The notes under the pieces: generated by a model
Databases searched by the model: none
What the model was told of the DNA's origin: nothing
The model's input: the letters and a program-made list of their open reading frames with translations, nothing else
Assembly (NCBI GenBank): GCA_002269645.1
Contig: NIVC01000482.1
Location: 124,001 to 188,000, forward strand
Length of the DNA: 64,000 nt
From: Macrostomum lignano
Taxonomy: Eukaryota
Direction: 5' to 3'
Made by a program: the position numbers and the translations under genes
Shown here: in pieces, positions 6,579-58,336 of the stretch
How the letters are laid out: each line of letters starts with the position of its first letter
Position numbering within the stretch: the stretch's first letter is position 1

Positions 6579-7125
<547 letters not shown>

Positions 7126-8982: not shown

Positions 8983-9571
<589 letters not shown>

Positions 9572-29700: not shown

Positions 29701-32270
29701 TCGAGACTGAGCACAACGCCTTCACTGAGGACAGCAAGCAGCAGAAGAAGCGCCAGATTGCTCAGGAGATGCTGGAGCAGGCCGGAGCCGACGGTGACCG
29801 ATCCGGTGACGCCCAGCTGGTCAGGGAGATGGCCGCCGCCTTCCTCAGCGAGAACCTGCCAGAGCCAGTGTTTGGCGCACCCAAGCCGGGCGCCGGCATG
29901 TGGGCCTCCGTGATCCGCGTGATGCGACCGCTCACTGGCCAGACTGCTCAGATTATCCGACTACAGCAGAATGAAGCTGCGCTCAGCATCTGCCTGTGCC
30001 GGTTCGCCTGCAACCCCATGGAATCCTACCTGCTAGTTGGCATTGTCAAGGACATGACCCTGGCGCCCAGGTCCGTTGGCGGCGCCGTCCTGCGAACCTA
30101 TCGGGTTGTTGGCGCTCTCGAAAGGCTGGACTTTCTGCACGAGACCGCTGTGGAGGATGCGCCTCAGGCTATGTGCCCCTTTCAGGTGCACGACCGCTTT
30201 TATCTACCTGGTTACGAATTGTACCTGTGTTGGGGAGATTTCTGGGAGAGGGGAGGAGAAGTTTTGGGAGATTTCTGGGAGAGGGGAGGAGAATTTGAGG
30301 GAGATTTCTGACTGTGTTGGGATTTGTGGGAGATTTCTGTCTGTTGGAATGGGATTTGTGGGAGATTTCCGTCTGTGTTGGGATTTATGGGAGATTTCTG
30401 TAAAAATAATTTATAATTTTTTCAGGGTCGCGTCCTGGTCTCAGTCGGTCGCGTGCTGCGAATCTACGATTTGGGCAAGCAGAAAATGTTGCGCAAATGC
30501 GAGACCAAAGCCCTGCCCAACTACATTGTGTCCGTAGCGGCTTTCGGCGACCGCGTGGTCGCTGCCGATGTGCAGGTGAGAAATTGTAGCACACAGTCTG
30601 AGCTTAGTAATATTAGTTCATTTCTTGCGTTCCGTAGCAAATTATTCCATAAAACTCCAATTATATGCTGGATAAATATCAGTAGCTAATAAGAGTTTAA
30701 TATTCTGTTCTATTGTTACATTAAAATATTTGATTAATATGTGTACCATCCTAAGCTGTCGACGTCTTTCTGTTAGAAGTAAGCCGATATGTATCGAAAA
30801 CAGCATGATAAAGCAGTTTTAGCCATCTACTATTTTGAGAAGTCTATATGTATCGGAAACAATACGATAAAGCAGTTTTAAGCTCTTTGTTATAAGTCAG
30901 CCGAAATGTATCGAAAACAATATGATAAAGCAGTTTTTGTTTCTCGCTATTTTAAGCAAGCCGATATGTATCGAAATCAGAATGATAAAGCAGTTTTAGC
31001 CATGTGCTATTTTAAGTTAGCCGATATGTATCGTGAAACTATTTCATTGAGGAATTTTAGTTTCCCTGTAATCCGATATGTCTCGAAAAACATGATAAAG
31101 CAGCTTTAGTTTCCCGCTATTTTAAGTAGGCCGATATGTATCGAAAACAATATAACCAAGTATCTCAAAACCCTACGCCTGCAGGAGTCGGTCTTCTGGA
31201 TGCGCTACCGAGCCTCGGACAACCAGCTGCTGGTGTTCGCTGACGATTCGCTGCCCCGCTGGGTGACCTGCCTGGCCATGCTGGACCAGTTCAGTGTCGC
31301 TGTCGGCGACAAGTTCGGCAACATCAGCGTCCTCCGCCTGCCGCCCGACGCTGTCGAAGACGACGCCGACGATGTTGGCGACCTGGGCTCGGCGCGCGGC
31401 TCCCTGTTTGACAGGGGCGGCCTGCTGGGCAGCTCCAGCCAGAAATGCGTGGCTGAGTGCACCTTCCACGTGGGCGAGGCGCTGAGCAGCCTGCGGAAGA
31501 CCAGCCTGGTGCCCGGCGGAACGACTGCCTGCTGTACACCACCATCAGCGGATCCGTGAGTGCCGGCTTGGCTGCAGTCTGCCGCACCCCCCTGCCTGCA
31601 CTACCAGATCCCCACTTTAAACTTCTGACATCCCAGATTGCACTTTAAGCTCCTGGCATCTCAGATATCCCCACTTAAAGCTCCTGGGATCTCAGATCCC
31701 CACTTTAAGCTTTTGACATCCCAGATCCCCACTTTAAGCTCCTGACATCCCAGATCCCCACTTTAAGCTCCTGACATCCCAGATCCCCTCTTTAAGCTTT
31801 TGACATCCCAGATCCCCACTTTAAGCTCCTGACATCCCAGATCCCCACTTTAAGCTCCTGACATCCCAGATCCCCTCTTTAAGCTCCTGGCCGACCAGAT
31901 CCACACGCTCTGCTTTTGACACGGATTCCCACTTTTATCTATCTAACATCCCAGACCCCTAGCGACAATTGAACCCTCCCTCACTCCTCAGGTGGGCATC
32001 GCGCTCCCCCTGGCCAGCAAGGAGGAGCACGACCTGTTCCAGCACCTGGAGCTGCACCTGCGCTCCCAGCACCTGTCCCTGCTTGGCCGGGACCACCTGC
32101 AGTTCCGGTCGATGTACTTTCCCAATCGGCGAGTGATCGACGGCGACCTGTGCGAGATGTTCAACAACCTGGAGCCGGCCAGGCAGAAGGAGATTGCCCA
32201 GGAGCTGGATCGGACACCCAGCGAGCTGTCCAAGAAGCTGGAGGACATCAGGACTCGGTTCGCTTTCTGA
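20789..32270 (+). CDS. SF3B3: Splicing factor 3B subunit 3 (SAP130/Rse1), 11 exons: 20789-21014, 23751-24038, 25636-26042, 26905-27213, 27489-27809, 28158-28554, 28921-29327, 29634-30185, 30426-30575, 31185-31555, 31992-32270
   Basis: Unmistakable sequence from [19 protein letters not shown] through [23 protein letters not shown] and VIDGDLCE to [12 protein letters not shown]. All introns are GT-AG with consistent phases, except that exon 10 is 1 nt short (frameshift near 31519). About 1235 aa once corrected. AATAAA at 32424. Confidence 0.97.
21845..22431. mobile_element. Non-autonomous DNA transposon (MITE) in SF3B3 intron 1, with 8-bp target-site duplication
   Basis: Terminal inverted repeats CCATAGTCAGGATgATGT / ACATGATCCTGACTATGG, flanked by direct repeats CCTTGATA at 21837-21844 and 22432-22439. 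Confidence 0.85.
24105..25600. repeat. C-rich compound minisatellite (CCCCAGTCCCAGAATC / CCCCAGTCCTACAATC), SF3B3 intron 2
   Basis: Read directly. Confidence 0.96.
26090..26870. repeat. Pyrimidine-rich minisatellite (TCTCCCCGTCTCCCTCTCGTCT-like), SF3B3 intron 3
   Basis: Read directly. It explains the SPSPSRLL ORFs. Confidence 0.95.
27980..28120. repeat. About 23-bp minisatellite (GGGGTAAGGAGTCAGTGTACATT), SF3B3 intron 5
   Basis: About 6 degenerate copies read directly. Confidence 0.85.
28575..28770. repeat. About 23-bp minisatellite (CTACTGCTGAGTTTCTGGTTTAT), SF3B3 intron 6
   Basis: About 8 copies read directly. Confidence 0.9.
29378..29600. repeat. (ACAG)n microsatellite, SF3B3 intron 7
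   Basis: Read directly. Confidence 0.92.
30780..31150. repeat. Degenerate ~60-bp tandem repeat (AGCCGATATGTATCGAAAACAATATGATAAAGCAGTTTT...), SF3B3 intron 9
   Basis: About 6 copies read directly. Confidence 0.88.
31610..31890. repeat. 29-bp minisatellite (CTCCTGACATCCCAGATCCCCACTTTAAG), SF3B3 intron 10
   Basis: About 9 copies. Related arrays occur at 37911-38110 and 39820-40680. Confidence 0.93.
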
Positions 32271-32560
32271 GTCATTGTGACAAACTGTTTGACTCTGCGG
32301 ACTTTTGTCCGAGTTAATTGTGCCGTTTTTCCTAATAACTTTTCTTATTCGTGTTGTCTGTTGAATTATTATTAATAAGTATAATGTTTAGTAATCATTA
32401 TGTACAGTTTCCAGTCCGGTGGAAATAAACTTGCAGCAATCCTAGCGCTCGCATTCAAACTGCCTGGCGTTTTTTGTTAAATTCAATTTCTAGGAATGAG
32501 CAGCTAATTAATAATAAATGCTGGTGCTGAGTATGCCCTGGTTTTTCTACTCTATTAAAG

Positions 32561-33309
32561 TATAGCTTTTTGCAGCCCATTTGGGCTTACGCGCATTGAA
32601 TTTAATCCAAGATATGTTTGTCAAAGTAATGGAGCTTTTGTCTATGGTAGCAAGGCTGGCACAGCGGCATTTAATTTGGTCCAACAAGCATCAATTTGGT
32701 CCATTTAGTTCATTTGCAGCTCAGTCCCAGAATTGTGGACCATATGCTAGGCTGTTGAACGGATGTCATTGGCTTGTGATCGAAGCACTCGACGGAGGTG
32801 AACACCCAAAGGACATTGCAAGGTTGCTGAATGTAAAAGAAAAGGTGGTTTACAGCATCCAGCAGCGCGTTGAAACTCTGCCGGCAGAGATTGCCTGCGA
32901 AAGGTTGGCAATCGCCAAGGAAAGTTGCTCGAGAGCCTCAGGTCCAACTGCTACTCGATGCAGTGGAGACGAACCCTTTGTTGACGTTGCCGAAATGCAG
33001 CAGAAGTTGAGGGAACAGCTCCAGTTGGTTATCAGATTTCGACTATCAGCAGAGCTCTGGAAAAGCAACTGAAAATTTTTGGTAGAGACGCTGACATTCC
33101 AGCGGTGCGAACAACCTGCAGACGGTTGAGAGAAGGCAAGAGTTTGTCCAATGACTCACGAGTGTTTGGACCAAATGGATGCTTGTTGGACCAAATTAAA
33201 TGCCGCTGCGCCAGCCTTGCTACCATAGACAAAAGCTCTGTTACATTAGCAAACGTAACTTGGATTAAATTAAATGCGCGTAAGCCCAAATGGGCTGCAA
33301 AATGCTATA
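32561..33309 (+). mobile_element. Internally deleted DNA transposon with ~140-bp terminal inverted repeats and an HTH-coding core (pogo/Tc1-mariner-like)
   Basis: 32561-32702 is the imperfect reverse complement of 33167-33309, and both ends carry TA. The internal ORF has LVIEALDGGEHPKDIARLLNVKEKVVYSIQQR, resembling a pogo/CENP-B-type N-terminal HTH. No DDE domain. Absent from the paralogous site near 38715. Confidence 0.75.
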
Positions 33310-33510
33310 TTGGCAGTCCGCGGCAATGTGCAGCAATATCCGAGCAAAAGAGGCAATAATAACGACTATGAATTTTCATGAGATGTTGCAATCATCGTGG
33401 CATCAACTTTTCATTTAAAGTAAGCCATCACCAGAGAACACACTAATCTATTTTATTTAACAATATTAATATTAGTTGTGGTCTCATCAGCAGGTGTATT
33501 AATATGCGGT

Positions 33511-35422
33511 CTATTCAGGCAGGTGCAGTACAAACTGAATCTGGCCATGCGACTGGGTTTTCTCGCATTTGATGGGCTTTCCGCCAACCAGATCTTGCAT
33601 GCACCTCTGTACCATGTTAGCCAGCTGACGAAAGTCTTCAATGCTGCTCAAGTTGGTCTGGCGGATGCGGGGACAATCTTCGAGAACTTTGTGTAGAGCC
33701 TGCAGCATCCAGCCACCTGTGTCTGGCCGAGAGTAGGCCATGTGCCCTGGACAGCTGGCGAAAAGCGCGGAGCAGCCCGGCACAAGACTTGGCAACGAGC
33801 TGCCAGCGGTTGCAGCGTCTTCAAAGCTGAAGACTTCAAAGCTGAAGCCTTCCAGCCCGGTGCTGAGCTCATCAACACTGTGCCGATAAGCGCCTCTGCA
33901 AGCCTGGTAGAAGACTCTGACGTGGCTGGCAATTTTTTTCAATTTGTTTACCAATTTCGGAAGTTCAACAACTGTTCCGTCTGAGAGGACAAAGCCGTCT
34001 TGAGATCCATGGGCCGATATGAACAAGTAAATTTTAATATTTGATGACGCATTGGCTGAATGGCGTTTGCATGAATTTAATATGGCCTTGATGAAATCTG
34101 AATAGGTGCTTTTTAAGATATTATATCCATGCAGCATGTAGATGTTGTTTTTTATGCAGCCAAGCATCTCAGAAATTTCTCTGCAGTTCTTAAAATCGGC
34201 GTCGCAACCAGACCTATCCGGAAGATTACTCGTACTTCCTGAGGTGCTGTAGCTCTGCACAAACACGCCCACCGCTAACAGAGTGTTCTGTCCGGACTCT
34301 GCGCGTACATGTGCCAGCTCAGCGGGTTCCTCACCCACTAGCTGGGGTAAGTCTGTAATTTGTGTTTGTCTGTATCCTTGAGGATCCAAACCTCTAGGAA
34401 TTCCAGTTCCCAGCAGAAATTCAAATCCTACAGCTTGCAGCAGGCGCACCATGTTGCTCACTCCATGTTGTTCGGTAATAGAAGTCACAGCCCGCTCCAA
34501 GTAAATATTTAGCGAATCCCAACCGGAAAATTGGGCAGTGAATCTGTAGACCTCAAGGCCACTGAAAGCTGCGCTATGTTGAATCTGCTGGACCTGCTGC
34601 GGTCTGTGAAAAAGGAGGTTATGGCGAAAACTTAGAGTTACCCTACTGATAACCATAATTTCCACGACTTTTTAACACTTGGGGAATAGGCAAGATGAAC
34701 AAGCAGTGCACTTCATCTCTACAAATGAATAAAGTGAAAACAAGTTAATCAATTACACACCGGTTAAGTGGAAGGCTTGACGTGGCCTCTTGGGGGGAAA
34801 ATACGCCAATAGACACGCACAGTTGAAATATTGTAACTGACTCCAGGTCAGGCCGCCGATTCCTGGGAATGCAATCGTACAGGTCGCTTTCATGCACTAT
34901 GCCGCCAAGAACAGGTCGCCCGTCTGCTGTTACCAACAGAACATGAAGCAGCCACCTGCTGCCAGAATAATAAGCATCATCCAAGTTGTTCCTGACTGCA
35001 TTTCGGTACTCCTCAAGGCTGCCAATCTGAATTGCCCGCAGTCTGACTGACGGCATTGGTCGTAAGTTACCCAAGGTTTCAACTAGCGGGTGAGGGCTCA
35101 GAACAAGTAGTCGCAAAGTGATCGTACTGATTGAGGCGGCCTCAGCAGGGGGAAGTGAGGCGTCACTTTGCCGTTGCAGGCCTTGCGGCTCTGAAAGGTC
35201 ATTCGACGTAAAGAAGACGTTGAAAACTGCATTGGCTTGCAAAAAGGAATCAACTTTTTAGTTGCTGGGCAAAAGTCATGCGCACAAACCTGAATGATCT
35301 GGCAGCGGAGCAACATTGTCCTCTTCGGGATCGGCAGAAACGCTCGAGTTTCTGGTCCTGCCGATTGGTGCTGCAGCTTCCGGAGGCAAATTTTCTTTGT
35401 TAGAATGGTTTTGCTGGTCCAT
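33511..35422 (-). CDS. Caspase-family protease A, 3 exons: 35422-35290, 35235-34761, 34603-33511; 566 aa, long non-CARD/DED N-terminal region
   Basis: Catalytic motifs LFISAHG and FYQACRG, p20 RSGCDAD, p10 ASCPGHMAYSRPDTGGWMLQAL. GT-AG introns of 54 and 157 nt join three open frames in phase (1701 nt). Minus-strand AATAAA near 33452-33457. Confidence 0.88.
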
Positions 35423-36499
35423 TTTAACTCTGGATTGGAGCTGCAGATATTAAATACAATATTACTGTTATGGAGGCGGCAAAAAACATGAGTGTAAAGT
35501 AATTAGGAATTCCTTACTTAGCCTCTTTAAATGAAAAGGTGCATCATCTATGCTCATCTAAGGTTGCATTGTCAGGTATTTTGTAATAAAATAAAGCAAA
35601 CTATTAAAACAATTTGAAACAAGGTACTCAGTATTTTTGATGGGTAGAACCATGTTGGGGTAGGAGTGAATGCACAGATGGCTGTCTCATGCCAGGTGAG
35701 GTTTCCAATGAACTTTTGCACCCTTAAGAATATTTAAGAATATTTTATATTATCCTGGCCTATACAGAATGAATGCATTTGGTTTGGTTGAGTCCACAGA
35801 CCTAAAAATATAAAGACTATGCATTGGGAATTCTTACAGTATCACAATAGTCATAAAAAGTGCTTCTTCTTTAGAAAAAAAAACAATTTTTGTGACAACC
35901 TTTCTTTTTCTGGCAAAAGATTGTAGCAAAATGCTCAAAACTTCAAAGCCTTTTTCAAAGATTTTTGCTCTCATGAATACACAAATTTGCCAAATAATTT
36001 AAATTATCTGCATGCTTAGGTAAATCATCAGTAAGGTTCGAAATGGTCTATACATGTAAGAGGTTTGAACTCAGCAATTCGAGCTGTAAAAACTCCTAAA
36101 CTTCTAAAAAATGTTCATCAATTTTTCAGCAACAAGAGCCTTGGAGCCTTGGCGGAGGGGTTGGGCGCCCACCCAACCAAAAAGAGACAGAGCGTGCACA
36201 CGCGGCGGGGGAGGGGGCACACAGAAAGAGCTTGCTTGCATGGACACTTGCCGCACTACAAGTAAAGCCGGTTTGCTTAAGTGCCTTGACTTACTTGACT
36301 CAGCTGCAGGGGGCTCCGTGCATCCGGATGCTGCGAGGAGGCGTTGCCGACCATTTCACTAACCCCTGGCGACCACGGGCAGCCGGTGCTGCGGTGTCGC
36401 GCAGGGAGATCCACGGAGGCAATTGGACTGACTCCCCAGACTGCTGCGACCTGCCCTACTCCTCTTTTTCGCAATCGTGTGCGCGCTAGCGCCCCCCGA

Positions 36500-37820
36500 C
36501 CCTAGCGTCGTTGTAATGTATGTAATGTAATGTAGATCCACGGTGGTGCCGGTGCCTGCAGCGCGGTCCCCCTCCGGAAAGTCCAGGAGGTGGATTGTCG
36601 CTCGCCCGGTAGCCCTTAGGTAGGCAGAGGTTCTCGAGCCTGAAAACATCGGAAAGGTCCGGGTGTGGGCCGAGGTAGATGAGCCTGTCCTGAGTAAAGG
36701 CGGGGTATCCACAGACACCGGAGATGCAGAAAGGGCATTCCTCGCTACGGATTTTTCCGTTTTTTTGGAGGTAACGATGCTTGGCAAAACAGCCATGACC
36801 CGAGAAGGCCATGGTCACGGCCCTGATGTCCCTGCTGTGGTTGAGTCCAAGCAGGGCCTTGCGCAGGGCGGAGGAAGGACAGGGGACAGCGGCACGGGAT
36901 TGTTGGCAGTCGGGGGCGTTAGCCCACCTCTCCCTGTGCTTTGAAGCCACCCACTGGTTGATCCGAGTGGTGACAACGGCGGTGGGGGTTGGGGCCACGG
37001 GCAGGGGACCAGTAAAAGAACCGGTCGAGCCAGCCTTGGCCAGGCAATCGGCCAACTTGTTGACGGGGTGGCCCGAGTGCCCGGGGATCCACCTTAGGGA
37101 CACCTCGTTAGATGTGCCTAAGCGGTTGAGCTGCCCGATGCTGTCGAGGACTGTACGCGAGCCGGTGGTGGTGCGCTCAAGGGCGAGGATCGCCGCTTGA
37201 TTGTCCGAGTCGAGGATAATCTCCTTCCCCCAGACGCGCTGATTGTACAGCTCCATGGCGCAGGAGCTGATGGCGAGAACTTCGTTCTTGAAAACGGTGG
37301 TGCAGGTGCCGCTGTGCTTGGAGAAGGTCGCCACGGTTCTCCCTCCAGAGGCGGAGTTAATTTGGGACCCGTCAGTGAAGCTGTGGATTTCATGGGGTTT
37401 CCAGTTGTATCTTGCTTCATGACGGGTGGAATGCTGGTTTTGAATTTGAGCGGAGGGCAGAGCGTGGACGGGATTCCGTCCGAGAAGGTCAGCAGGCCTC
37501 TCGCTGCTTCCAGGTCTCGCAGGCTGAGGTCGCCGTGCGGCTGGAGGTTCCGCTTTCTGAAGGTGAACTGCTTCTGGATTTGGACACCCGCGTCAAGCAG
37601 ACGGCGGGTGGTCTTCATTGCCTCGCCTCTGACAAAGAAGTCCAGTGGAATGTCCAGGAAGGAGTTCATGCTAGAGGGAGCCGCGCTCATGATAGCTCGA
37701 CAAGCGCGGCCTTGCACCCTGTTAAGAGCATCGAGAAGCCCTTTCACCTCTAGGGCACTGTTCCAAATGAAGCCGGCAAAAGAGAAGGCCTCCTGTCTAA
37801 CAATGGCAGTGTAATCCACC
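36500..37820 (-). mobile_element. 5'-truncated non-LTR retrotransposon, RT C-terminus plus RNase H (I/R1/LOA-type)
   Basis: YTAIVRQEAFSFAGFIW..LNRVQGRACRAI (post-RT) and RNase H motifs [48 protein letters not shown]. Frameshifted, with a (TACAT)n-like tail near 36510-36532. Confidence 0.88.
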
Positions 37821-37910
37821 AGAGGCGGCGGGCAGCGCGAATGCGCCGAGCAATGAGATGCGGCTCACCCCCTTATATCAAACTGCTACACTTCTACTAG
37901 TACCAGGTGT

Positions 37911-38110
37911 CAACTTTAAGCTCCTGGCATCCCAGATCCCCACTTTAATCTATAGGAATCCCAGATATCCCCAATTTAAGCTTCTGGCATCCCAAATCCC
38001 CACTTTAAGCTCCTGACATCCCAAATCCCCACTTTAAGCTCCTGACATCCCAAATCCCCACTTTAAGCTCCTGGCATCCCAAATCCCCACTTTAAGCTCC
38101 TGACATCCCA
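37911..38110. repeat. Second copy of the SF3B3 intron-10 minisatellite
   Basis: Same CTCCTGACATCCCA(G/A)ATCCCCACTTTAAG unit. Confidence 0.92.
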
Positions 38111-38148
38111 GACCCCTAGCAACAAGTAAACCCTCCCTCACTCCCCAG

Positions 38149-38426
38149 GCATCGCGCTCCCCCTGCTGGCCAGCAAGGAGCAGCACGACCTGTTCCAGCA
38201 CCTGGAGCTGCACATGCGCTCCCAGCACCTGTCTCTGCTTGGCCGGGACCACCTGCAGTTCCGGTCGATGTACTTTCCCAATCGGCGAGTGATCGACGGC
38301 GACCTGTGCGAGATGTTCAACAACCTGGAGCCGGCCAGGCAGAAGGAGATTGCCCAGGAGCTGGATCGGACACCCAGCGAGCTGTCCAAGAAGCTGGAGG
38401 ACATCAGGACTCGGTTCGCTTTCTGA
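38149..38426 (+). pseudogene. SF3B3: Duplicated SF3B3 last exon, with its acceptor and 3' UTR
   Basis: Differs from 31992-32270 by loss of 4 nt at the exon start, a 3-nt insertion and 3 substitutions. Out of phase with the exon-10 donor. The 3' UTR with AATAAA is also duplicated, to about 38680. Confidence 0.9.
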
Positions 38427-38967
38427 GTCATTGTGACAAACTGCGGACTTATGTCCGAGTTAATTGTGCTGTTTTTCCTAATAACTTTTCCTATTGTTTG
38501 TGTTGTCTGCTGAATTCTTATTAATAAGTATAATGTTTAGTAATCATTATGTACAGTGCAGTCCGGTGGAAATAAACCTGCAGTAATGCTAGCGCTCGCA
38601 TTCAAACTGCCAGGCGGTTTTTTAAATTCAGTTGCTAGGAATGAGCAGTTTATTGATATTAAGTGCTGGTGCTGAGTATGTTGTGGCTTATTTATTTTTT
38701 CTCATCAGTTCAAGTTTGGGCAACCAGCTGCCTTAGCGATGTGCAGCAATTATGTGCAGGCAAAAAAGAAGCAGAAATAACACGACTTTGATTTTTCCTG
38801 AGATGTTGCAATCTCTCTGGCATCAACTTTCTTTTATGCCATCACCATGAGAACACACGAATCAAGTTTAATTTTTCCAATAGATTGACACTTGATTAAT
38901 TTTCTTACAATAATAATTAATTTTTTTTCATACAGTATTATTAATATTAATAATATTACTCATTATA

Positions 38968-41795
38968 CTATTGTATATTATTGTCAATATTATTGGTACT
39001 TGTAACATTTTTATTATTATTAGCATTATTAATTTTTTCAGCATAAGCTACTCGGGGGTAACACTTTTTTATTATTCCATTAAATTCATGATCAATTCCA
39101 TATCCATCAATATAATTCAGCCTTTTTTGGATTTTTTGAGCTAAGCCAGCAATACTCGTATTGTTATTGAATAATCGGTAACCGTAAAAACAGAGTACAT
39201 ACCGCACGGCCATCAGCAACCGGCTGCCGTCCTTCTCCTGCCATCGGCTGACGTAGCCGCTCTGGCTGCTGTAGATCACCGAGCAGTTGAGCCGCAGCTC
39301 CATTGGCAGTGAGGCTCCGTCTCCAGCTTCACCGTCTCCATCGTCTCCAGAGTCGAGCGCTGGGTCCTCTTGCTTCACGAAATGCTCTTTGGTGCCTCGA
39401 CAAGCATGGTAAAATGTCAGAACCTCGTCTGCTGCCCTTGACAATGGTTCCAACAGCTCCCTCAATCGGACATGCTCTGTTCCAGTTGAAAATCCATTTC
39501 TGTTCCCATGCGATGAAATGAACAGAAATACTCTTGCCACATGTAGCGGACATTTCTCTCTGATAAACTTGAGCAGTTCTTGCTTCGATCGGTCACCAGG
39601 TTTGTACTCAATAGGCTTGTCAGTACAACCAAGTTTCTCGGCTACTTTTCGGATGTATCCGCGGTCAGCCTTGTAGCCATGTTCACATTCGGACGTATCG
39701 TTTCTGTTGGCATTCTCAATTACGATGGACACCGCAATGCTTGTTTCTGTCGATACTAAATCTAAAACGCAATTTGAAAAAAGCACGTTTAGCTGCCTGT
39801 CATTAAAAATAAAAATGTATCTGACATCCCAGATGGCCACAGTTGGTTTTCCGAAATCTTGGATCCCCGCTCCTCACATCCCAGATACCCACTCCTCACA
39901 TCCCAGATCCCTACTCCAAACATCAAAGATACCCACTCCTCACATCCCAGATCCCTACTCCTAACATCAAAGATACCCACTTCTCACATCCCAGATCCCC
40001 GCTCCTCACATCCCAGATACCCACTCCTCACATCCCAGATCCCTACTCCTAACATCAAAGATACCCGCTCCTCACATCCCAGATACCCACTCCTCACATC
40101 CCAGATCCCTACTCCTAACATCAAAGATACCCGCTCCTCACATCCCAGATCCCTACTCCTAACATCAAAGATACCCACTCCTCACATCCCAGATCCCTAC
40201 TCCTAACATCAAAGATACCCACTTCTCACATCCCAGATCCCCGCTCCTCACATCCCAGATACCCACTCCTCACATCCCAGATCCCTACTCCAAACATCAA
40301 AGATACCCGCTCCTCACATCCCAGATCCCTACTCCTAACATCAAAGATACCCACTTCTCACATCCCAGATCCCCGCTCCTTGTATCCCAGATACCCACTC
40401 CTCACATCCCAGATCCCTACTCCTAACATCAAAGATACCCGCTCCTCACATCCCAGATCCCTACTCCTAACATCAAAGATACCCACTCCTCACATCCCAG
40501 ATCCCTACTCCTAACATCAAAGATACCCGCTCCTCACATCCCAGATCCCTACTCCTAACATCAAAGATACCCACTCCTCACATCCCAGATCCCCACTCCT
40601 TACATCCCAGATCCCCACTCCTCACATCCCAGATCCCCGCTCCTCACATCCCAGATCCCCGCTCCTCACATCCCCACTTTTAGCTTGCGATTGTAGATCG
40701 TACTGTTCATTGTTATATTCCTAAGGCATTGAGACATTCACAAGTGCCACTTACTTTGACCTGCTTCCAGAGCATTTAGCGACTGATGATTATCCTTGAC
40801 TTGTGACACTCCTTTGCGCTTATTGCCGATTAGAAATCCGCTGTGGAATTTAGAATTCAAATGGCATTCAATCTCTTTTTTGCACAGTATTAAAAGTTTT
40901 ACCATCAAAACTACGTGCTACATGTATCAGATATCAAAGGAGATTCGCCGGAAGGCAGCAACGCAGGCACACGGAAGGGGCGACTTAAATGATTTTTGTT
41001 TGAGAAGGCGCACAACAAAAAGTTGGCCTGTGTTCTTGAATTTCGTGTGCCTGCGTTGCTTCGCTCCAGCAATGCAAAAAAATGTCAGATGGATTCCACC
41101 TTTGATAATTTTGCTGCTAATTAACTCTGCTGACAGAATTCTCCCAGCAAAAAAGTTTTGGCAAGACCTTAGAGTCAGCCTCACGCTTTAAGTTGAACAT
41201 GTTCCTAACGCATGAACAATAATAAGCTTCGTCGCTGGCGTTTGGGGCATTGTGCACGAAGGTATGACGAATGCGCTTCCATTTTTAGAACTGACGCTTG
41301 CACCCAAATGAGACCTACTCTGATTACAAAAACTTTCTGCATAGTCTTCTCAGTCTCCTCTAACAAACTGCATTCCCTGCTCACGAGGGGAACATGAAGT
41401 TGAATGGCCCAAGAGATTTTCTAAAAGGTTTGGTCTTCCAAATTTTCCTATTTCAATTGGGCCTTAAAAAAGAATGAAGTACACTTTCGAGGGTAGGCTA
41501 CAAGAAAGTCTTGAAAATTCCCATGTTTCCTACTATACTCATGCAGCTTAAGCAACAAATGATTTTCCCCCATCAGAAGTACTCACGCTGTATTCGTTTT
41601 TTTCTGTTGCTCATTGTGCTTAGTAGCTTCAAACTCGGCTCGAAGCTCTTCAAGCGATCGAAGCCGCCCGACATCCACCAATTCCTGGGGCCGCTCCGAC
41701 GCCACTTTGTGACGCCGAAGCGGCCCCTGAAAGTTTGAATCGTTATTGGAGTTAAGCCTTATAGGAGTTTGTTCGGTTTGCTCAGATTTGCTCAT
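38968..41795 (-). CDS. Caspase-family protease B; catalytic exon 39761-38968, probable upstream exons 41795-41587 and 40840-40755 (about 362 aa)
   Basis: FLFISSHG and FYHACRG (H in place of Q), p10 SSQSGYVSRWQEKDGSRLL. The upstream exons give a phase-consistent GT-AG model (1089 nt) but are low complexity and tentative. Confidence 0.8.
39820..40680. repeat. Compound minisatellite (CCCACTCCTCACATCCCAGAT / CCCTACTCCTAACATCAAAGATA) in the caspase B intron
   Basis: Read directly. Shares the CTCCT.ACATCCCAGATCCC core with the SF3B3 intron-10 repeat. Confidence 0.94.
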
Positions 41796-41867
41796 AAAAA
41801 AGGGTAAAGTAGAATGAACGCCAGTCAGGCTTATTTAAATTGTATGTAGGGTGAGCGCTCAAGCAGT

Positions 41868-44800
41868 GTGCATTACGGGGTTGGCCTCTTTCCATTTCTC
41901 TGTCATTCTATATCGGCGTACATTCAACTCTCTAACCATGCACGCGCCAACCCCCATTGAAATACACGCATCGGCATTGACTCGTGATTAGGACTTTGCT
42001 ATCGGTATCGATCCAAACAAATTCACACGACTTATCAGAGTTCCTACAGTGGCGTCGCAAACACACAAACCTACGCGAGGGCAATGGCCACTAGCTACGT
42101 TTCTCTGCCCCCACCAGAGCCGTTCTCAATTATCAGCGACCCTCACAATGCTGGCAAACGCTGGAGCGAGTGGTCAGCACGCTTTCAAGATTGCATTGAC
42201 GCTTCTGCCCCCGCCAGCTGAAGGGAATCAGACCACACTCGACAACACGCTAAATGCTTTAAAGGATTTCTTTAGAGAGAAAGAACATCGTCTTCGCTCG
42301 ATACCAATTTAGGAACTGCATCCAGCAACAAGGAGAGAAAATCGAAGCTTGGTATTCACGAATGCGTGCTTCAGCCGAGGCTTGTGAGTTCGAAAATCTG
42401 AAGGACTCCCTTATCAGAGACCAGCTTGTAGCGACCTGTACATCAGACAAGTTGCGACGGCGGCTACTCCAAGAGACCAACATTTCCTTGGACGAAGCCC
42501 TGCGAAAAGCGAGAGCGTTTGAAGCAGCGGAGGAGCAGGCATCGGAGATGGAGTAGACAGATTCGCAGGTGGCAAGCGTTACAAGATCCAACAAGCCCCG
42601 GATGAACGGACGCGAAGCATCCAGCACCGCCAGCAGCAGCAGCAGCAGCAGCAGGCAGTCTCAACAGCAGACATGCTACCGCTGCGGAGAAAAAGGTCAC
42701 TCTACATGCGACTTGGCGAGAGGAAAAATCTGCCTCAACTGCGGAAAAACCAATCACCTAGCCAAAGCATGCCGCAAAGCACGCTCGAGTAACAACACGA
42801 TTCGATCGCAAGTCAGCGCTAACCTAGTGAGCACCTCACCGGAGCCAAACCTCGACACTAGCATTGGCGAAGACGTTTTTCGGCCTGTGCAAATACAGCA
42901 GCTTCCCAGCAGACGTCTCGTTAACTGTCGAAATCGGAGACTGTAAGCTACCGATGATGCTGGACAGCGGAGCCAGCTGCAGTATCATGAGCATCAAAAC
43001 ATTCCGACAGCTGGCCGATCAGCGAATTCGAACCACCAAGGTAAAAGTTCATGCATATGGAACGCCCGAACCTCTCAAAATCATCGGTACTGCGAGCTTA
43101 GGCATCAAAATAGGTACCGCTAGCGCAACTGTGCCCTTTCACGTTCTCGACGGCGACGGTCTAACGATACTCGGACGCCAAGCTGCCTTTGAGCTAGGAA
43201 TCCTGCTTATCCAGCGGCCAATTCTCAGCCAGACAGAAGATGTCAACTCCAACGTCAAAGCAGCCGAGGGGTATAAAAGCCAGAACATTCAGGACATCTT
43301 GCATCAGCACAAAAAAGTATTTGATGGAATCAGATGCATCAAAGGCGTGCAGGTCGAAGTTCAGCTGTCGGACAACGCGGCCCCGGTGTGTCATCCGCTA
43401 GCCCGAGTTGCGGCGCATCTCCGAGAATCTGTCGTCAAGGAGCTGAAAGACCTAGAAAGGCAAGATATCATCGAGCCAGTAAAAGGACCCTGCGCGTGGG
43501 TGGCCCGCATGGTAGTATTGTAGTTCCAAAGGACGATGGCGGAGTCCGAATCTGCCAGGACCTGCGCAACCTAAACGCCCATGTCATCCCTGAAAAACAA
43601 CAAATACCGACATTGGACGAGGTCACCGAGGAGATGTCCGGAGCCAAGCTGTTCAGCGAGCTAGATATTCGTAAAGCCTTTTACCAGATCCCAGTGCACG
43701 AGAACAGCCGACACCTTTTCACATTTAGCATTTAGCCGCTCGGACTAATGCGTCTCAAAAGACTGAGCATAAGTTTTACGAATGCATCCGAAATCCTACA
43801 AAGAGTCATGCTCGGCGTGCTCAGCGGAATCGATGCTGTTCGATGGTCCACGACGATGTCATCGTATACGCTTCGGACCTGCAAGAGCACTGCAAAAGAC
43901 TCGAAGCCTGTCTGCAGCGTCTCGAAGAATTCGGCATTACGCTAAATAAAGAAAAGTGCAAAATCGCCGTCCCCGCTGTCGAGTTCCTAGGAATGCACCT
44001 ATCTGCAAAAGGAGTGCAGCCTGCTAATGAGAAGACCGAAGCTATGAAGCACTTCAGACAGCCGACCAGCGTATCCGAAGTTCGCTCGTTCCTAGGCACA
44101 GCAAACTTTCTGGCGAAATTCATACCTAACTTCGCTGATGTCTCCGCACCGCCGCGCAAATTAACAAAGAAAGGGGAGACATTCGAGTGGACTGCCAGCC
44201 ACTCAAAAGCCTTCGAAGAGATCAAATCGATCATCTGTAAGGAAGAAACTCTTGCCTTTTTCGACCGCAAACACCAAACAGAGCTTATAGTTGACGCATC
44301 GCCAATCGGACTTGGTGCGATTCTGACACAAAAGCAGCCGGACGGAATCTGTAGACCAGTGGCTTACGCCAGCAGAGCGCTGTCACAAGTTGAGCAGCGG
44401 TACGCCCAGATTGAGCGGGAGGCGCTGGCTATCAAATTTGGCTGCTTAAAGTTCGAAAACTACCTGGCTGGTGGTCCAAGTTTTACAGTGGTGACCGACC
44501 ACCGACCGGTCCTGCCACTCTTCAGACCGGGATCCCGCCCGCCACCACGGATTGAACGCATGGTTCTTCGGATTCAACACCTCCGCTTCAACTTGGTGTA
44601 CAGACCGGGGCCGTCCAACCCAGCTGATCTACTAAGCCGCCAATCGCTTCCAGAGCTCAGGAAAAACTGGGGAGAGGTCTTCGACACCGCATACGTCAAC
44701 GCTGTATCAACAGGAGCCGTGCCAAAAGGTTTCAGTGCGGAACAAATTCGAGACGCAGCAAAGACAGACGCAGGAATTCAAGCCGCGCTGTGCGCCATCA

Positions 44801-45792
44801 AGACAGGAAACTGGAACACACACGACTCGGTACAACGCGCACTAAAAGCCATCAGCAGCGAACTGACAGAAGACAATGGAATGCTACTTCGAGGAGACCT
44901 CATTGTCGTCCCAGAGTCACTACGGAGACCAATTTTGCAACTGGCCCACACCGGACATCTTGGTGCCAATCGAACACTCAAGCGTCTGCAGACCAAAGTC
45001 TGGTGGCCAGGGATGCGCAGCGATTGTGATGTCTTCGTGAAATGCTGCATTCCTTGTCAAGCGTCGGACACTCGTACAAATCAGACACCTTTGAGACCGA
45101 CAAAGTTACCCGAGGGTCCCTGGCAGCAACTTGGAATGGACTTCTTCGGACCTGTCCAAGGCCAAATGCTTCTAGTTACTACGGACCTGTATTCTAAATA
45201 CCCGGAGATCAACATTTTGAGCTTGACAACAGCAGAGAGTGTAAAACCGCATCTGAGGAGATCAACCTGCCTCTGCCGGCCAACCTGCCTCTGCCGGCCA
45301 GCCTGTCTCTGCCGGCCAGCCCGCCGGCCAGAGGGACTTCCTTGCCTTCAGGAGGCGTCCGCGTGAGGCTACAGAGGGGCCGAAAATTTATAAATGACAA
45401 GCGCTGTTTGAATCTCAAACTGAACTGACAACAACAATATTATTTTTATTCCCGTCAACTGATTTACTGACAATAACAATATTTTATATTTCCGTCAGCT
45501 GTTATTTTTATTCCTCATCATTTTTTCCTTAGGGGGGAAGAATCGTAGGCTTGCGCCTTAGCAGTTCTCAATGTTTACTAGCTATTGAGTATTTGTGTGC
45601 ATTACGGGGTTGGCCTCTTTCTATCTCTCTCTGTCATTCTATATCGGCGTAAATTCAGCTCTCTAACCACATGCACGCGCCAACCCCCCATTGACTAATA
45701 TTTAAATACACGCATCGGCATTGACTCGTGATTAGGACTTTGCTATCGGTATCGATCCAAACTAACTCACACGGCTTGTCAGAGTTCCTATA
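41868..45792 (+). mobile_element. Decayed Ty3/Gypsy LTR retrotransposon: 5' LTR about 41868-42048, gag-pol about 42084-45250, 3' LTR about 45543-45792
   Basis: Paired LTRs; TGGCG PBS-like site at 42050; purine tract AGGGGGGAAG at 45531-45540. Gag with Zn knuckles CYRCGEKGH and CLNCGKTNH, protease LDSGAS, RT (ELDIRKAFYQ, HDDVIV), RNase H (VDASPIGLGA, EREALA), integrase HHCC and GMDFFGP. Order is PR-RT-RH-IN. Has stops and frameshifts, and the integrase is truncated. Confidence 0.95.
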
Positions 45793-45796
45793 GTAT

Positions 45797-45910
45797 GTAG
45801 GGTGAGCGCTCAAGCAGTTTCTCTCTGTGCCGTTGTCGGTGTGTTGTTGTGATACCGATGTCGTTGCCTAACAACAGTACAGAGAAAAACTGCTTGAGCG
45901 ATAACCCTAC
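45797..45910. mobile_element. 114-bp hairpin element (MITE-like) with ~39-bp inverted arms
   Basis: GTAGGGTGAGCGCTCAAGCAGTTTCTCTCTGTGCCGTTG (45797-45835) pairs imperfectly with 45872-45910. Confidence 0.7.
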
Positions 45911-46718
45911 CCAGCGGAAACTATTCGATGCTCTGCATTTTTGTAAGCACTGGAATTTTACTTACATCGAAGCGAAAAAAGCTTGTACATAGTTGCATGA
46001 AACATGAGCAGTCTGACAATTCAAAAAATTCACATTTAATACGCTCGTAGGTAATGCTTTCAGCGGTTTAGAGACTCGCCTTGCAAGAACCCTCTACAGA
46101 AAGTCCTCTGTCCCAGCATGGTCAGTGCGATCGTGTCGCCTTCAATTGCCTGTGACCTCGAGATTAACAGCTAAATACACTTAATTGTTTATGGCATGGC
46201 TTGATGATAAGCCTTAATCTCGATCCGGATTAGCTGATTTCTGCCTTTTCAAATTCTCCCTGCTTGACTCTCGCTGTCTTCTCGATCTTAGCTACATGTA
46301 TGGGAGCCAGCTCTAAGCTACCTTGAGGCTGGTCAATATCTGACAGCTGAGTGCGGGCCGAGACCAGAGCGCTAATAACTGAAGTGGCTGTCTATCTATG
46401 AAGAGAGTATCGCACACGGGTGTTAGTAGTCTTTTTTAGTTTTTTTAACTATACAGTTCATAGAATAATTATGAGAATTTCATCTTATACTACTGATAGA
46501 AATATTTATTCAAAGCATCCAAGTAAGAAATTTAAGAAGTAGCCAAAATAAAAATTACATAAAATAAAAAAATTAGGCAAAGCGTCATTATGCCAAATTT
46601 AGCAACAAAAGTTTACCGGTACTTCAGCCCAGACTATCAAAAGCAGAGTACACCAGTTTAAAAATAACTGTGAAAAAATACTAGTATGATACTCACAAAA
46701 AAGAAAGAGGAGACTGGG

Positions 46719-47140
46719 TTAGCGAATTGCTATTTTTATTACACGGAAGCATATTTGATAAATTTATATAATAAGCAAACATATAAACGCTTATTAAACT
46801 GAATAAAAACAGATTAGATTAGCTGAATAATTCCCATGACGCGGTAAAAAATTTACAATAGTACAATGTGAATAAAAACATTTTTAAATTGCAATGCAAA
46901 AATATAATACAAATTTGTGTAATACAAATTAGCGAATTGCGATTTTTATTACACGCAAGTATATTTGATAAATTTACATAATAAGCAACATATAAACACT
47001 TATTACAGTAAATATTAAAGTTTATTAGCTGATTAGATTAGCTGAATAATCACATGGCGCGTTGAAATATTTACAAGAGTACAAAGTGAATAATCTTTAT
47101 AAAAAATTGCAACGCAAAAATATGGTACAAATTTGTACTT
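46719..47140. repeat. Two diverged tandem copies of an AT-rich ~210-bp unit downstream of caspase C
   Basis: Both start TTAGCGAATTGC.ATTTTTATTACACG.AAG.ATATTTGATAAATTTA (about 46719 and 46929). Confidence 0.85.
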
Positions 47141-47200
47141 CAGTATAAAAGAAAAAATTGGCAGTTTTGTTTAAATAAAATGCTTATTAAAGCCGCCCAA

Positions 47201-48935
47201 TCAGTCCGGTTGACCAATGCATTCAGGGTTGTTCAGCTCCAGCTGGGCCAGCTCTTCTGTTGCAGCAGTTGTCCCTCCGGCTCCGTCACCCAAGCCAGTC
47301 TCGATGACGAAGTTCTCAAATCCCTGATTCGCGCTGTACTGCGTCTGCACGTAGGCCGTGTAGGATTTGCCTCTTTGTCGAAGGGGAACGATGCCCAGCT
47401 TCAAGAGCTGACGCAGCTCAGCTTGCAACAAGTCTGCCAGCCTCTTGACAGTGATTCTGCCACGGCGTCTGACAACATTCAGCAGCGCTCGCGGCATCCA
47501 GCTGCCTTTGTGTTGATTCCTGTACGCCTCATAGCCCGCCATGCTGGCGAAGATGGCAGCAGCGGCCGCCATCTCGGGCGGCAGGGTGCAGCCGGCGGCT
47601 TTCGGCGGGCTGACAAATCCCAGGCAGCAAGCAGAAGCCGGTCGGTGATTCTCCCCGGCCTGAGCAGCGTGAAACCGCGGGCCCCGGCACGCCTGGTAAA
47701 ACAGCAGGACAAAGCCAGCCAGGTCTTCCACTTTCTTCATCAGATCCTTAATAGAGACAAAGAGAGCGCACGTTCTCTGATGAACAGCCGAGCTGCCCCG
47801 CAATTTCATCAAAGTTCTCCTTGTCCATTTTAAAACCAGCCCTGTCTTTATCTGTGCTGTCTTTTTCGTACTTGCCGATGATAACAGAAACAAAGGCATT
47901 CGGCTCCGCCCACTCATAGGAAGGTTTCGAGTTCAGTGCGTAAAGCTGCTCAAGAGGATTGCCTTGGTCGTCAGACACCGTAGGAATCGGCGGAGCTTCG
48001 GCATGCTCGACACTGGCTGCGACCTCAGCTAACTTGCCGCTCGGGACGCCTGACATTCGAAGTTGGGAACACCTGCAGCAGTTGGCAATCCGGTCAGCCA
48101 ACCTGTCTGTCGTTACTGACTTGTCCAATGCCTGATGCACATCCTGCCACTGCCAGTTTGGCTCCCCAAAGTTTGGCTTGAGTAGGTAGATCTCGGCATT
48201 GCAGAGCGTCGGACATTTCGGAGCTTCATCGTCACCGCTACCAGTCTTGCCAACACCCTGTTCGACGCTGCCACTGTACACTTCTGCGCATTCTGTCGGA
48301 CAGAGTAAGTAGGCCACTCGAATCTTGATAGGTTCCGAGCTCTGTCTCGAATACAGCGGCTTGTACAGCTCGTCCTCTGTCACAATTTTGCCGCTAAGCA
48401 CTGGCTGCATGCAGTTGGCAGTGACGTCAATCTGGTGAACAATCAACGCCTCGCAAGCTTTTTGTGACTTCACGTCAGACATGAACTCTTCAACTGCCTG
48501 ATGGTAGCTCTCCACCGAATCGGGCTTTTTAAAATCGAAGTCAAACCGGTTGTTGCGTGATTTTCTGCTCGGAAACTCGACTTGGCTATCTGAGTGGTGA
48601 GTGTCGAGAAACAGCACTGACACTGTCTCAGAAGTCTCGAATTGCGGCAGCTGCGGACAGCTCTGTTGAGTTCTGCTGCATTGATTCTGGTCATTGCCAG
48701 ACTCTGAAATGAATTGGAAATTATCATACAATGGAAGTCTTGCCAATGTTAAAAAATAGAATTATCCAGGATGCATTGTAACTTTTCACTTACCTTCAAG
48801 TTCGCAGTCTGGCACTGATGGAGGCCCAACTGCATCTTCTTTGGATGCAACCGCAGTTGCACTGCTCAGCTTCTCATCTGGCTTCACTCCTGACATTGAA
48901 TCCTGCAGAGAAGAAAATGCCACACTTTCAGACAT
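47201..48935 (-). pseudogene. Caspase-family protease C; exons 48935-48794 and 48703-47201, disrupted by a deletion plus frameshift near 47760
   Basis: Has p20 DRAGFKMD, FYQACRG and p10 ASMAGYEAYRNQHKGSWMPRAL. The sequence jumps from QLGCSSENV to FVSIKDLMKK in another frame, so the SHG-containing segment is absent. The N-terminal domain is homologous to caspase A. Confidence 0.82.
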
Positions 48936-53285: not shown

Positions 53286-54714
53286 AGTGTCATTAAGTTT
53301 CATCATTAAGTAAGTCAATGTCACTTTACTATCTACTATACTCTACTCCACTCCACTCTATTTTACTCTTACCCCAAATTACGCTTCTTTTGTCCTACTC
53401 CCAGTCCATATAGTCTATGGAACAAATAGGATATCAGTAAAACAAGCAGACTCCAGATGGCTCACCCAGCGGTCTCCAATTCCACCGATGACGCCCGCAA
53501 TATTGTGCATGGCTTATTCTAATTTGTAGTTTTTGAAAACCTATGAAAGTTAAAAGATTTTTCTTGACTAAGCTGCTGCAGGTGATCAGGTCGCGGCCTT
53601 TTTATCCTTTCGTGCCGGCTGGCGGAAGTAGAAGTGGGATGAGAGCCCAAGCAAGGGTTTCAGCACTAGCTGTAAACAATATCTTGTCTCTAAGTCTCTT
53701 ATTGCTGCCTCCGAAGCTGATTTTCGCTGAAAGTCTCCACCTAAAGCTGTCAGGCCTTGTGCTGGTGGTGAGGGGGTTTTAAATCGTTTCAGAGCTGAGA
53801 TGCCTTATCAACACAGAAAATTATTAACTTCGGGGCCTAGGGGCCTGCTAAGCCTGTGGGGTGGAGGTTGAAGAGGCCGGAGATGCGATAAATAAACAGA
53901 GAACAGCTCGGAGAAACTGGGCACAGGCAGTGCTAGCAACTATAGCTGAAGATGCGGCGCAGATTGCTTGGCTTGTTGCTTTTGCAGAAGAGAAATTCAG
54001 TTTGGTGGCTTGCTGTGATGGAGAACTTTGCTTCAGAGAAGACGGGACAGAGGAATGGCGCTGGTTTTGCTGCTTTTGCTCCGGAAATTGGAGCTGAAAC
54101 TGACTGCTATGGCTGTTCTTGATGCAGTCAGAGTTTTGCGATATGCCAAACTTTTATGTTAGCTCTGCTTGTCTGACTCCTGGAAATTTAGTAGGCTTTT
54201 CAAGAGACAGTCGTGCCTACTTATTTTTGAGTACAATTCTTATCCTGTGCTCATCCACGCATTTATGGCTGGGGGAGAAGTCTTCTCTGGTTGGCTGGAT
54301 CAAGAGCTAGTCTCTGTTGCTGTTTTGCTTCTAAAAGAATATTTTGGGGCTCGAGAGACCACTCCCCCCCTTGGCCTTTGTTGCAAACTCCCCTAATGCG
54401 GCCCCAATTACTCAAACTTCTCACACACCGGCCTCACCCCATTTCTCTGTGTCATTTCCGTTGAGAAGACCATATAATATAAGCTCAAAAGTTTGCTCTA
54501 TAGAAATATTGTTTTCCAAACTCCATGGACTGCTACTGTCAACTGGACTGCGATACGCTTTTTCTCAAACAGAAGGAAGCTAAGAATTTCTTAGAAAGGA
54601 GATTGAAGGCCGGAAAGTAGCGAACATTTAGTGTGCTCTAGAGCAGGGATTGGCAAACATTGTTAACTAAAACCGTCAGATAGATAAGCTAGAGGCCGGA
54701 GGGGGGAGAGAGGA

Positions 54715-56093: not shown

Positions 56094-56524
56094 TAAAACA
56101 CCCTAAAACCGCATGAAGTTTTGGCCATAGACTAAAACTTAACTTTTCTGACTTAAAATTACGAGTATCAGTTAAATGCAGCTTTCTCATTTACTGAACT
56201 GTCAGGCTCATGGGCCAACCAAGCTAGCGGCTACGAGTAAAAAATGAAGACACCGACAACGACCATAGACAGTGGCTCTGCCAAGTGAGAAATAAATCAA
56301 TAATTCCCATTCCCACTCTATTCATTTCCATGGCCCGTAGGCAAGCCTGCGGATTTGAAATTGATAAATTGGGAATGAACTATACTTAATTACTTAACTA
56401 CGTTTCAAAAGTTGGAATAGATGCACAGTAAGGTACGTTTTATGGGCCAAAGTTGGTGAGTTCCACACTCATTGATGCATTATTCATGTAGTTTTGAAGC
56501 AGTAAGGAATATCTTCTCTCCTGT

Positions 56525-57785: not shown

Positions 57786-58336
57786 TCCTCCTTTCGTCTC
57801 TCCTCTCTTTTCTCGATCCCTTCTAACTTCTTTCTTCACTTCTCTTCCCTTCTTAGTCAGCCGCCACCATCATCCCTTTACCCCTGGGCCCGCTGCCAGT
57901 CTGCAGTCTGCTGGTCTCACCCCCCGTGATTCTCACACCCGTGCGTGCCAGACTTCGAAGAGCTCATTCTGCAGTCCTGACCCTTGCCCAGCTACTCAAC
58001 AACAGTTCCATCTCGTCCAACTCAAAGCCGTGCTCAACCGGGAGTACGCACAGATGGCATTCGCTGTGTCTGCGCGTACCAAAACGTGATTAAACCCAAA
58101 TCCCGTCGGGTATTGCCGGATTGAGGGGAGGGGTGAACTGCTAGAAACCCAAAGCGACTCAGGAGGAGACCAGAAACACAGAGGAAAGCGAACTTGGGCT
58201 GGAAGCGTCGGTTGCTGTTCGCTCTTCCCTCCCGCGTCTCGTCTCTCTCGGATGTCGCGGATCCCCGCCTCCCGCCCCAAGTCGAAAATCGCGCATCCAG
58301 TCATCCTTTGCTGGCCTGCCTGGAGAGAGAGAGAGG

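Follow-up and report, generated by a model that had tools for sequence, protein, structure and literature searches.

Caspases generally need a partner across their α5/β6 surface. For caspase-8 and the pseudo-caspase cFLIP-L, a partnership across this surface is established (PMC7586951), and several animal caspases carry a second caspase-like domain within the same chain. Caspase-X of the corals Acropora millepora and A. digitifera combines an inactive N-terminal caspase-like domain with an active caspase domain (Moya et al. 2016, PMC4715348) and has been modelled as a cis pair resembling cFLIP/caspase-8, formed via β6 (PMC4715348). In mammalian caspase-16, the prodomain originates from a duplication of caspase exons and has lost the catalytic dyad, the C-terminal domain being active (Eckhart et al. 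2025, PMC12198278), and in Mytilus coruscus four caspases have two CASc domains (PMC10967218). Here, we analyzed 64,000 nucleotides of the flatworm Macrostomum lignano (assembly GCA_002269645.1, contig NIVC01000482.1, positions 124,001 to 188,000; hereafter the window, in which all positions are numbered from its first letter), the minus strand of which carries three very divergent caspase-like genes, namely A (35422-33511), B (39840-38968) and C (49563-47201). Our analysis suggests, with a probability of about 0.7, that A and C belong to a caspase family that our searches retrieved from M. lignano alone, in which the prodomain is a shrunken caspase domain of ~185-190 residues. A first-pass annotation of the sequence had regarded such an architecture as not known in animal caspases; given the published coral, mammalian and mussel cases, the Macrostomum proteins are a new example of a known pseudo-caspase plus caspase design and not a new architecture. 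They carry, in one polypeptide, a predicted pseudo-caspase fold N-terminal to an active-type caspase, as do proteins of the caspase-X/caspase-16 type.

The N-terminal domains of A and C (N-domains) begin at residue 83 in both proteins, upstream of paralogous catalytic domains, and a phase-1 intron precedes the domain in both genes, as described in the first-pass annotation. The blocks which that annotation had matched were recovered with MAFFT, namely TLRLLVLS/TVSVLFLD, SLEEYRNAV/SVESYHQAV, LHVLLVTADGRPVLGGIVHESDLY/VHQIDVTANCMQPVLSGKIVTEDELY, VTIFQLC/IRVAYLLC and GLEVYRF/NAEIYLL, with two helical segments coming after them. A tblastn search of the window with A and C as queries failed to pick up the similarity; BLASTP between the two N-domains gave an E-value of 6e-4, and their Smith-Waterman score of 60 compares with a mean of 30 (standard deviation 4.6, maximum 52) over 1000 shuffles, corresponding to a Gumbel p of ~1.2e-4. 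At the profile level, hhalign aligned the C clade with the A clade over 69 columns (E 3e-5, probability 73%), and reciprocal hmmsearch against 1995 six-frame pieces returned the other clade as the best non-self match in both directions (E 0.003 and 0.02). Taken together, the shuffle statistics, the profile matches and the same position in the protein establish, at the sequence level, that the N-domains of A and C are homologous, their similarity being weak yet above chance.

Protein searches using the spliced A product and the N-terminal open reading frame (ORF) of C returned matches in Macrostomum lignano only. The homologue search with the full-length alignment yielded P0006 and P0007 only, and when 1.84 billion representative sequences were scanned exhaustively with HMMER using the N-domain profile, four proteins were retrieved, all from M. 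lignano (P0005, P0003, P0007 and P0002), P0007 being a new paralog added by this search. N-domain identity is 27-28% between the A and C clades and 42% between P0006 and P0007, compared with 32-33% and 54%, respectively, for the catalytic domains. Accordingly, the prodomain has been kept while the family diverged.

The fold of the N-domain was predicted with AlphaFold2 for residues 35-222 of P0007, supplied with an alignment of five N-domains and with neither templates nor catalytic-domain residues. The resulting model, with a predicted local distance difference test score (pLDDT) of 67.4 and a predicted template modelling score (pTM) of 0.72, displays the element order β1-α1-β2-α2-β3-hairpin-α3-β4-long loop-β5-α4-α5-β6, which is that of a caspase p20+p10. 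An independent AlphaFold2 run on the full-length protein gave the same N-domain elements, α1 excepted. When the model was compared with the PDB using Foldseek, the 50 best matches all belonged to clan CD and consisted of caspase-7, -3, -1, -4, -8 and -11, CED-3, caspases of insects and corals, cFLIP-L (3h13) and MALT1. Among these 50 matches, the best E-value was 2.7e-4, probabilities were 0.99-1.00, alignments covered ~184-236 columns, and the query template modelling score (TMq) ranged from 0.44 to 0.58 (0.47-0.58 without the two MALT1 matches). The p20+p10 strand/helix order initially proposed from the sequence is supported by the modelled element order and by the 50/50 caspase-type matches. 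Folds that had been named in advance as contrary outcomes, namely TIR, PB1, death fold or disorder, are not those predicted, and the early remark that neither domain resembles an all-helical CARD or DED agrees with a predicted α/β prodomain of six main strands and with Pfam scans devoid of CARD or DED. The P0007 N-domain is 40-42% identical to those of the C clade and 25-26% identical to those of the A clade, and the predicted fold is extended to A and C on the basis of this homology. We therefore consider with moderate confidence that the N-domain is a degenerate, dead caspase fold to which a caspase is fused.

Active-site positions were located through the spacing of β3, hairpin, α3 and β4 in both domains of one protein. 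The N-domain position equivalent to SAHG reads TVN in P0007 and TAN in C (48414-48422) and P0006, while the A clade has TAD there, in line with the loss of the SHG His already proposed. The accompanying proposal that the Cys at the end of β4 is kept holds for C (48300-48302), P0006 and P0007 (YLLC, YLQC), and for A (FQLC) only with a suitable splice donor. This Cys occupies the QAC position of the catalytic domain without the QACRG context around it, and α4 opens with an invariant Trp that corresponds to the Trp of the GSW/GGW motif of the catalytic domains. The only hhalign alignment between N- and catalytic domains, itself non-significant, falls in the same register (TAN...YLLC versus SAHG...YQAC), and in-register motif echoes (SSLP before β5, GW at α4 and Cys after β4) accompany an overall similarity that is non-significant. 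Between β5 and α4, the N-domain is far shorter than the catalytic domains, whose conserved Arg motif lies in this segment. Because the active-site positions lack the His and the Arg-motif segment is shortened, the N-domain is predicted to be proteolytically dead. Separately, predicted β3 contains an invariant His (LLHVLL, IVHQID, IVHEIE; position 63 of the first sequence in alignment A5), 4-5 residues before the catalytic-His position, at 34939-34941 in A and 48434-48436 in C.

Sequence comparisons provide a different picture. A Pfam scan of the N-domains with E-values up to 10 detected neither PF00656 nor CARD/DED, the sole hit being a chance match to DUF7647 (E 0.13-0.19), and the N-domain profile had no match among PDB sequences, against which phmmer with full-length A found weak caspase matches in the catalytic part only. 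The hhalign comparisons of the N-domain with the family's own catalytic domains were non-significant (E 0.06 and 0.09), and 12 pairwise Smith-Waterman comparisons between N- and catalytic domains gave p mostly >0.05 in inconsistent registers. That none of these methods (Pfam, PDB profile, hhalign, pairwise alignment) links the N-domain to caspases is the first of several points that weigh against our interpretation. The fold itself is derived from one model of moderate confidence and a five-sequence alignment, the five AlphaFold2 models spanning pLDDT 44 to 67; the protein modelled is the paralog P0007 and not A or C; and the root-mean-square deviations of the N-domain model to caspases reach 4.5-10.1 Å. 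The full-length model (pLDDT 49.6, pTM 0.41) is too poor to judge how the domains pack against each other. In A, the β4 strand and its Cys hang on a candidate splice donor and are dropped by two database models, and the C copy, with ratios of nonsynonymous to synonymous substitution (dN/dS) of 0.5-0.9 relative to its paralog, gives no sign of constraint.

These results leave some room for an N-domain that is another three-layer α/β fold or a lineage-specific prodomain, serving as a recruitment or oligomerization module, the AlphaFold2 model being a wrong guess. The empty sequence searches, the shallow alignment, the pLDDT of 67 and the two out of five models below 50 are what one would expect in that case. 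We nevertheless consider it unlikely, since a model built without templates or catalytic residues still found clan CD caspase-type structures as its 50/50 best PDB matches, with no Rossmann, TIR or flavodoxin fold among them, and since the element order, the β3 hairpin and the α4-α5 pair agree with a caspase, as do the Cys and the Trp that fall in register.

The degenerate caspase fold and the catalytic domain are encoded together. P0007 corresponds to one intronless ORF of 1629 nt, nested in antisense within an IP3-receptor gene (L002, 10001-11629), and may have arisen as a retrogene from the spliced mRNA of a two-domain protein. Residues 55-615 of P0006 are encoded by one exon, exon 3 of A spans N-domain β5 to α5 plus the catalytic domain, and in window C the ORF continues past the N-domain into the first part of the caspase domain, up to a deletion. 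An N-domain not joined to the caspase exon, which the first-pass annotation had named as evidence against its proposal, is hence contradicted by the single ORFs of P0007 and P0006 and by exon 3 of A. The annotation of assembly GCA_002269645.1 relied on a genome-guided transcriptome built from RNA-seq (PMC5730564); judging by their names, the P0005, P0006 and P0007 models probably stem from this annotation and would hence be transcript-derived. The fusion could in principle be a gene-model artefact uniting two separate genes, a suspicion nourished by the disagreement among the four database models of A (P0001-P0004) and by frame breaks in A in another stretch of the same assembly (L003). The uninterrupted ORFs of P0007, P0006 and, up to the deletion, window C, together with an A intron located inside the N-domain, make this highly improbable, and the separate-genes reading was rejected on the ORF continuity in P0006 and P0007.

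The 566-aa model of A previously drawn up was reproduced, with exons 35422-35290, 35235-34761 and 34603-33511 (Table 1). Forty-four residues of exon 1 also start the database models P0001 and P0003. The intron at 34604-34760 splits the N-domain between β4 and β5, and does not separate the two domains. Exon 2 offers four in-frame donors (~34842, ~34821, ~34815 and 34761) as well as a further acceptor near 35190; between them, P0001 and P0003 use two alternative donors and the alternative acceptor. P0001, the UniProt model, skips β4 altogether, and P0003 ends at FQL, so that the Cys is lost. Donor 34761 gives a β4-β5 spacer resembling that of the intronless C clade and keeps the SSLP motif, which recurs before β5 in all catalytic domains. 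On account of the C-clade-like spacer and the retained SSLP, 34761 is most likely the donor of exon 2, as a candidate deduced from the sequence.

None of the database models of A gives the full 566-aa protein. At L003, a 6.3-kb stretch that matches window 30512-36765 at 99.0% identity (46 gaps), frame-shifting indels break A exons 2 and 3, which plausibly explains partial models such as P0002. The window is thus flatworm nuclear DNA, apparently another haplotype of this locus. The C-terminal domain of A displays the hallmarks of a C14A/PF00656 caspase, namely the profile match, the His-Cys dyad and the Asp-binding Arg residues, with the motifs ISAHG (34006-34020) and YQACRG (33892-33909) and the Arg motifs DRSGCDAD and AYSRP.

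Gene C has a different fate. Exons 49563-49504, 48902-48794 and 48703-47748 translate exactly into the deposited P0005; the start codon assigned to C by the first-pass annotation, ATG 48935, falls within intron 1 of this model, which begins at 49563-49504. The same annotation treated C as a caspase gene, and this has to be revised: a 158-bp deletion has cost this copy its catalytic half, and only the paralog P0006 is intact. The deletion takes out the segment with the catalytic His (SAHG) and shifts the frame toward the ORF stop at 47748. Short direct repeats of the TCTCT type (TGTCTCT/CTCTCTG-like) are present at the junction. Downstream, the ORF 47201-47917 still matches PF00656 (E 4.4e-8), over profile positions 114-212 only, and the intact P0006 (615 aa) reads ...SENVRSLCPDDGY...LFVAISAHGCEAGIRTSDGKIVSVEELMKKVENLAGFVLLFYQACRG. 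The truncated product, 374 aa long, is annotated in GenBank as P0005, and because the deposited model has the same truncation, the deletion is not peculiar to one assembly.

Between window C and its intact paralog, dN/dS is 0.74 for the N-domain, 0.88 for the linker and caspase start, and 0.52 for the downstream remnant, values consistent with relaxed constraint. Most likely, C is a copy in decay, able to encode no more than a free N-domain, and A is the only gene of the window from which a two-domain enzyme can be made. A free N-domain raises the question of a mainly trans-acting dead domain, in which case P0005 or linker-released N-domains would bind paralogous catalytic domains and serve, like cFLIP, as decoys or activators. 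The deposition of the truncated ORF as a 374-aa model in an assembly annotated from RNA-seq, the Asp sites in the linkers (for instance ELID/ELVD in P0007 and VSDD in C) and the action of cFLIP-L itself in trans (PMC7586951) would suit such a role. It is nonetheless distinctly unlikely in our view, as the fusion is kept in all intact family members and as the N-domain of C (0.74), like the rest of the copy (0.5-0.9), evolves as expected of a decaying gene.

We favor a regulation in cis by the tethered dead domain. From the N-domain, a predicted disordered, Asp-containing linker of 40-65 residues would lead to the catalytic domain with its SAHG, QACRG and Asp-binding Arg motifs. If caspase-8/cFLIP-L and Acropora caspase-X are taken as models, a pairing in cis of the dead with the catalytic domain via the α5/β6 surface would be expected, yielding a pseudo-heterodimer with one active site, whose activity would be set by the tethered partner and not by a death-fold adaptor. 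More speculatively, cleavage at linker Asp residues (ELID/ELVD in P0007, VSDD in C, GLD/ITD in A) might relieve a restraint. Deletion of the pseudo-caspase domain of caspase-X, the only analogue for which an experiment is available, led to more killing (PMC4715348), and because of this precedent the dead domain is more likely to restrain than to activate the catalytic domain. A broader proposal, in which the built-in pseudo-caspase replaces adaptor-driven dimerization and truncated copies such as gene C serve as free cFLIP-like regulators in a self-contained circuit devoid of death folds, appears doubtful. Platyhelminths have been reported to lack FADD (PMC11463336), which gives some context to the adaptor-free idea and no direct support.

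Comparison with the published systems highlights both the likeness and the particularities of the Macrostomum proteins. As in caspase-X, an N-terminal caspase-like domain, here predicted to be dead, precedes a typical caspase domain in a single chain; however, the coral pseudo-domain can be identified as CASc by sequence and has neither His nor Cys, whereas that of Macrostomum is invisible to Pfam, ~185 aa long and retains the Cys. No sequence relationship was detected here between the two pseudo-domains, and their origins are therefore probably independent. Caspase-16 shares a prodomain predicted to be caspase-like without the dyad, an active C-terminal domain and the pseudogenization of some copies, but its duplication is traceable exon by exon, whereas in Macrostomum the similarity between N- and catalytic domains is non-significant and the catalytic domain is intronless. 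The cFLIP-L/procaspase-8 pair (3h13; PMC7586951) likewise has a pseudo-caspase regulating a caspase, and cFLIP-L ranks 30th among the Foldseek matches (TMq 0.49); unlike the tethered Macrostomum partner, which comes without a death-fold domain, cFLIP-L comes on its own chain, is recruited by means of DEDs and retains neither of the catalytic residues. The Mytilus coruscus proteins are spiralian caspases with a duplicated caspase domain, in which, by contrast, the domains were found by standard domain scans. Overall, the Macrostomum domain differs from the published cases in being undetectable by sequence, in its length (~185 aa versus ~250) and in the retention of the Cys.

Table 1. Positions of the caspase-related features in the window.
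Feature	Position	Strand	Basis or remark
A exon 1, short low-complexity N-terminus, phase-1 donor	35290..35422	-	ATG 35422; GT donor after 35290
A exon 2 (566-aa model), N-domain β1 to β4 and segment ending SSLPLNR	34761..35235	-	Donor 34761
A N-terminal pseudo-caspase domain (predicted), aa 83-268	34408..35122	-	Alignment A5 to P0007 model; C-clade homology
A N-domain TAD at the catalytic SHG His position	34922..34930	-	End of predicted β3, then hairpin and α3, as in the catalytic domain
A N-domain Cys (FQLC), end of predicted β4	34817..34819	-	Present only with donor at or downstream of 34815
A interdomain linker, ~40 aa, Asp sites GLD and ITD	34288..34407	-	Matching P0007 region has pLDDT <50
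A catalytic caspase domain and stop codon	33511..34287	-	Pfam PF00656, E 7.6e-11
Gene B, caspase-only paralog	38968..39840	-	PF00656, E 4e-5; comparison gene without N-domain
C exon 1, as in deposited P0005	49504..49563	-	Exon set translates exactly to P0005
C exon 2, low-complexity, phase-1 donor	48794..48902	-	P0005 exon set
C exon 3, N-domain, linker and first ~50 aa of caspase domain, premature stop	47748..48703	-	
C N-terminal pseudo-caspase domain (predicted), aa 83-269	48066..48626	-	40% identical to modelled P0007 domain
C deletion junction, 158 bp relative to paralog L001 11822-11979	47760..47761	-	blastn: two collinear blocks, 158-bp gap
C caspase-domain remnant, out of frame (β4 YQACRG and p10)	47201..47760	-	89% identical to P0006 residues 430-615

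The three genes are separated by satellites and retroelement fragments. At a paralogous locus, L001, counterparts of C and B (C' and B') follow one another as they do in the window, with ~93-95% nucleotide identity. No N-domain was found when the regions upstream of gene B and of its L001 counterpart were searched with the N-domain profile. Gene B (38968-39840, minus strand) has YHACRG in place of QACRG, and a His at the Arg position of the DRSG motif (Arg179-like), where the A and C clades have Arg; given this His, its P1 specificity may be altered.

Between C and B, window 42569-45366 (plus strand) holds a degenerate long terminal repeat (LTR) retrotransposon with a gag zinc knuckle, an aspartyl protease, a reverse transcriptase, an RNase H and an integrase zinc domain in shifted frames. 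L001 has no match to this stretch, and the C'-B' spacing is a few kb shorter there. A retroelement fragment with RNase H lies between B and A (36486-37334, minus strand), and one 29/44-bp satellite (CCAGATCCCCACTTTAAGCTCCTGACATC-like) flanks A and B with copies at 31604-31889, 37913-38110 and 39862-40674. More than 15 further micro- and minisatellite arrays occur in the window, for example at 16560-18130, 24099-25614 and 56519-57789. Upstream of C and C', ORFs of equal length are found in the window (~53851-54153, minus strand) and in L001 (3964-4266), the latter located shortly upstream of a homeobox gene called at 4621-9241; a Pfam scan of the window ORF gave no match.

The sole unusual platyhelminth prodomain recorded in a survey of lophotrochozoan caspases that examined M. 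lignano is a kinase-like one, in M. lignano itself (PMC11463336), and the pseudo-caspase prodomain was not noted in that survey. If our interpretation is correct, the Macrostomum family would represent an apparently independent origin of a tethered pseudo-caspase, after those of corals, mussels and mammalian caspase-16, and the first noted in flatworms. It would also indicate that such domains can diverge past the reach of Pfam and thus be missed in domain-based surveys. M. lignano is tractable for transgenics (PMC5730564), and the hypothesis of regulation in cis would therefore be testable in vivo.

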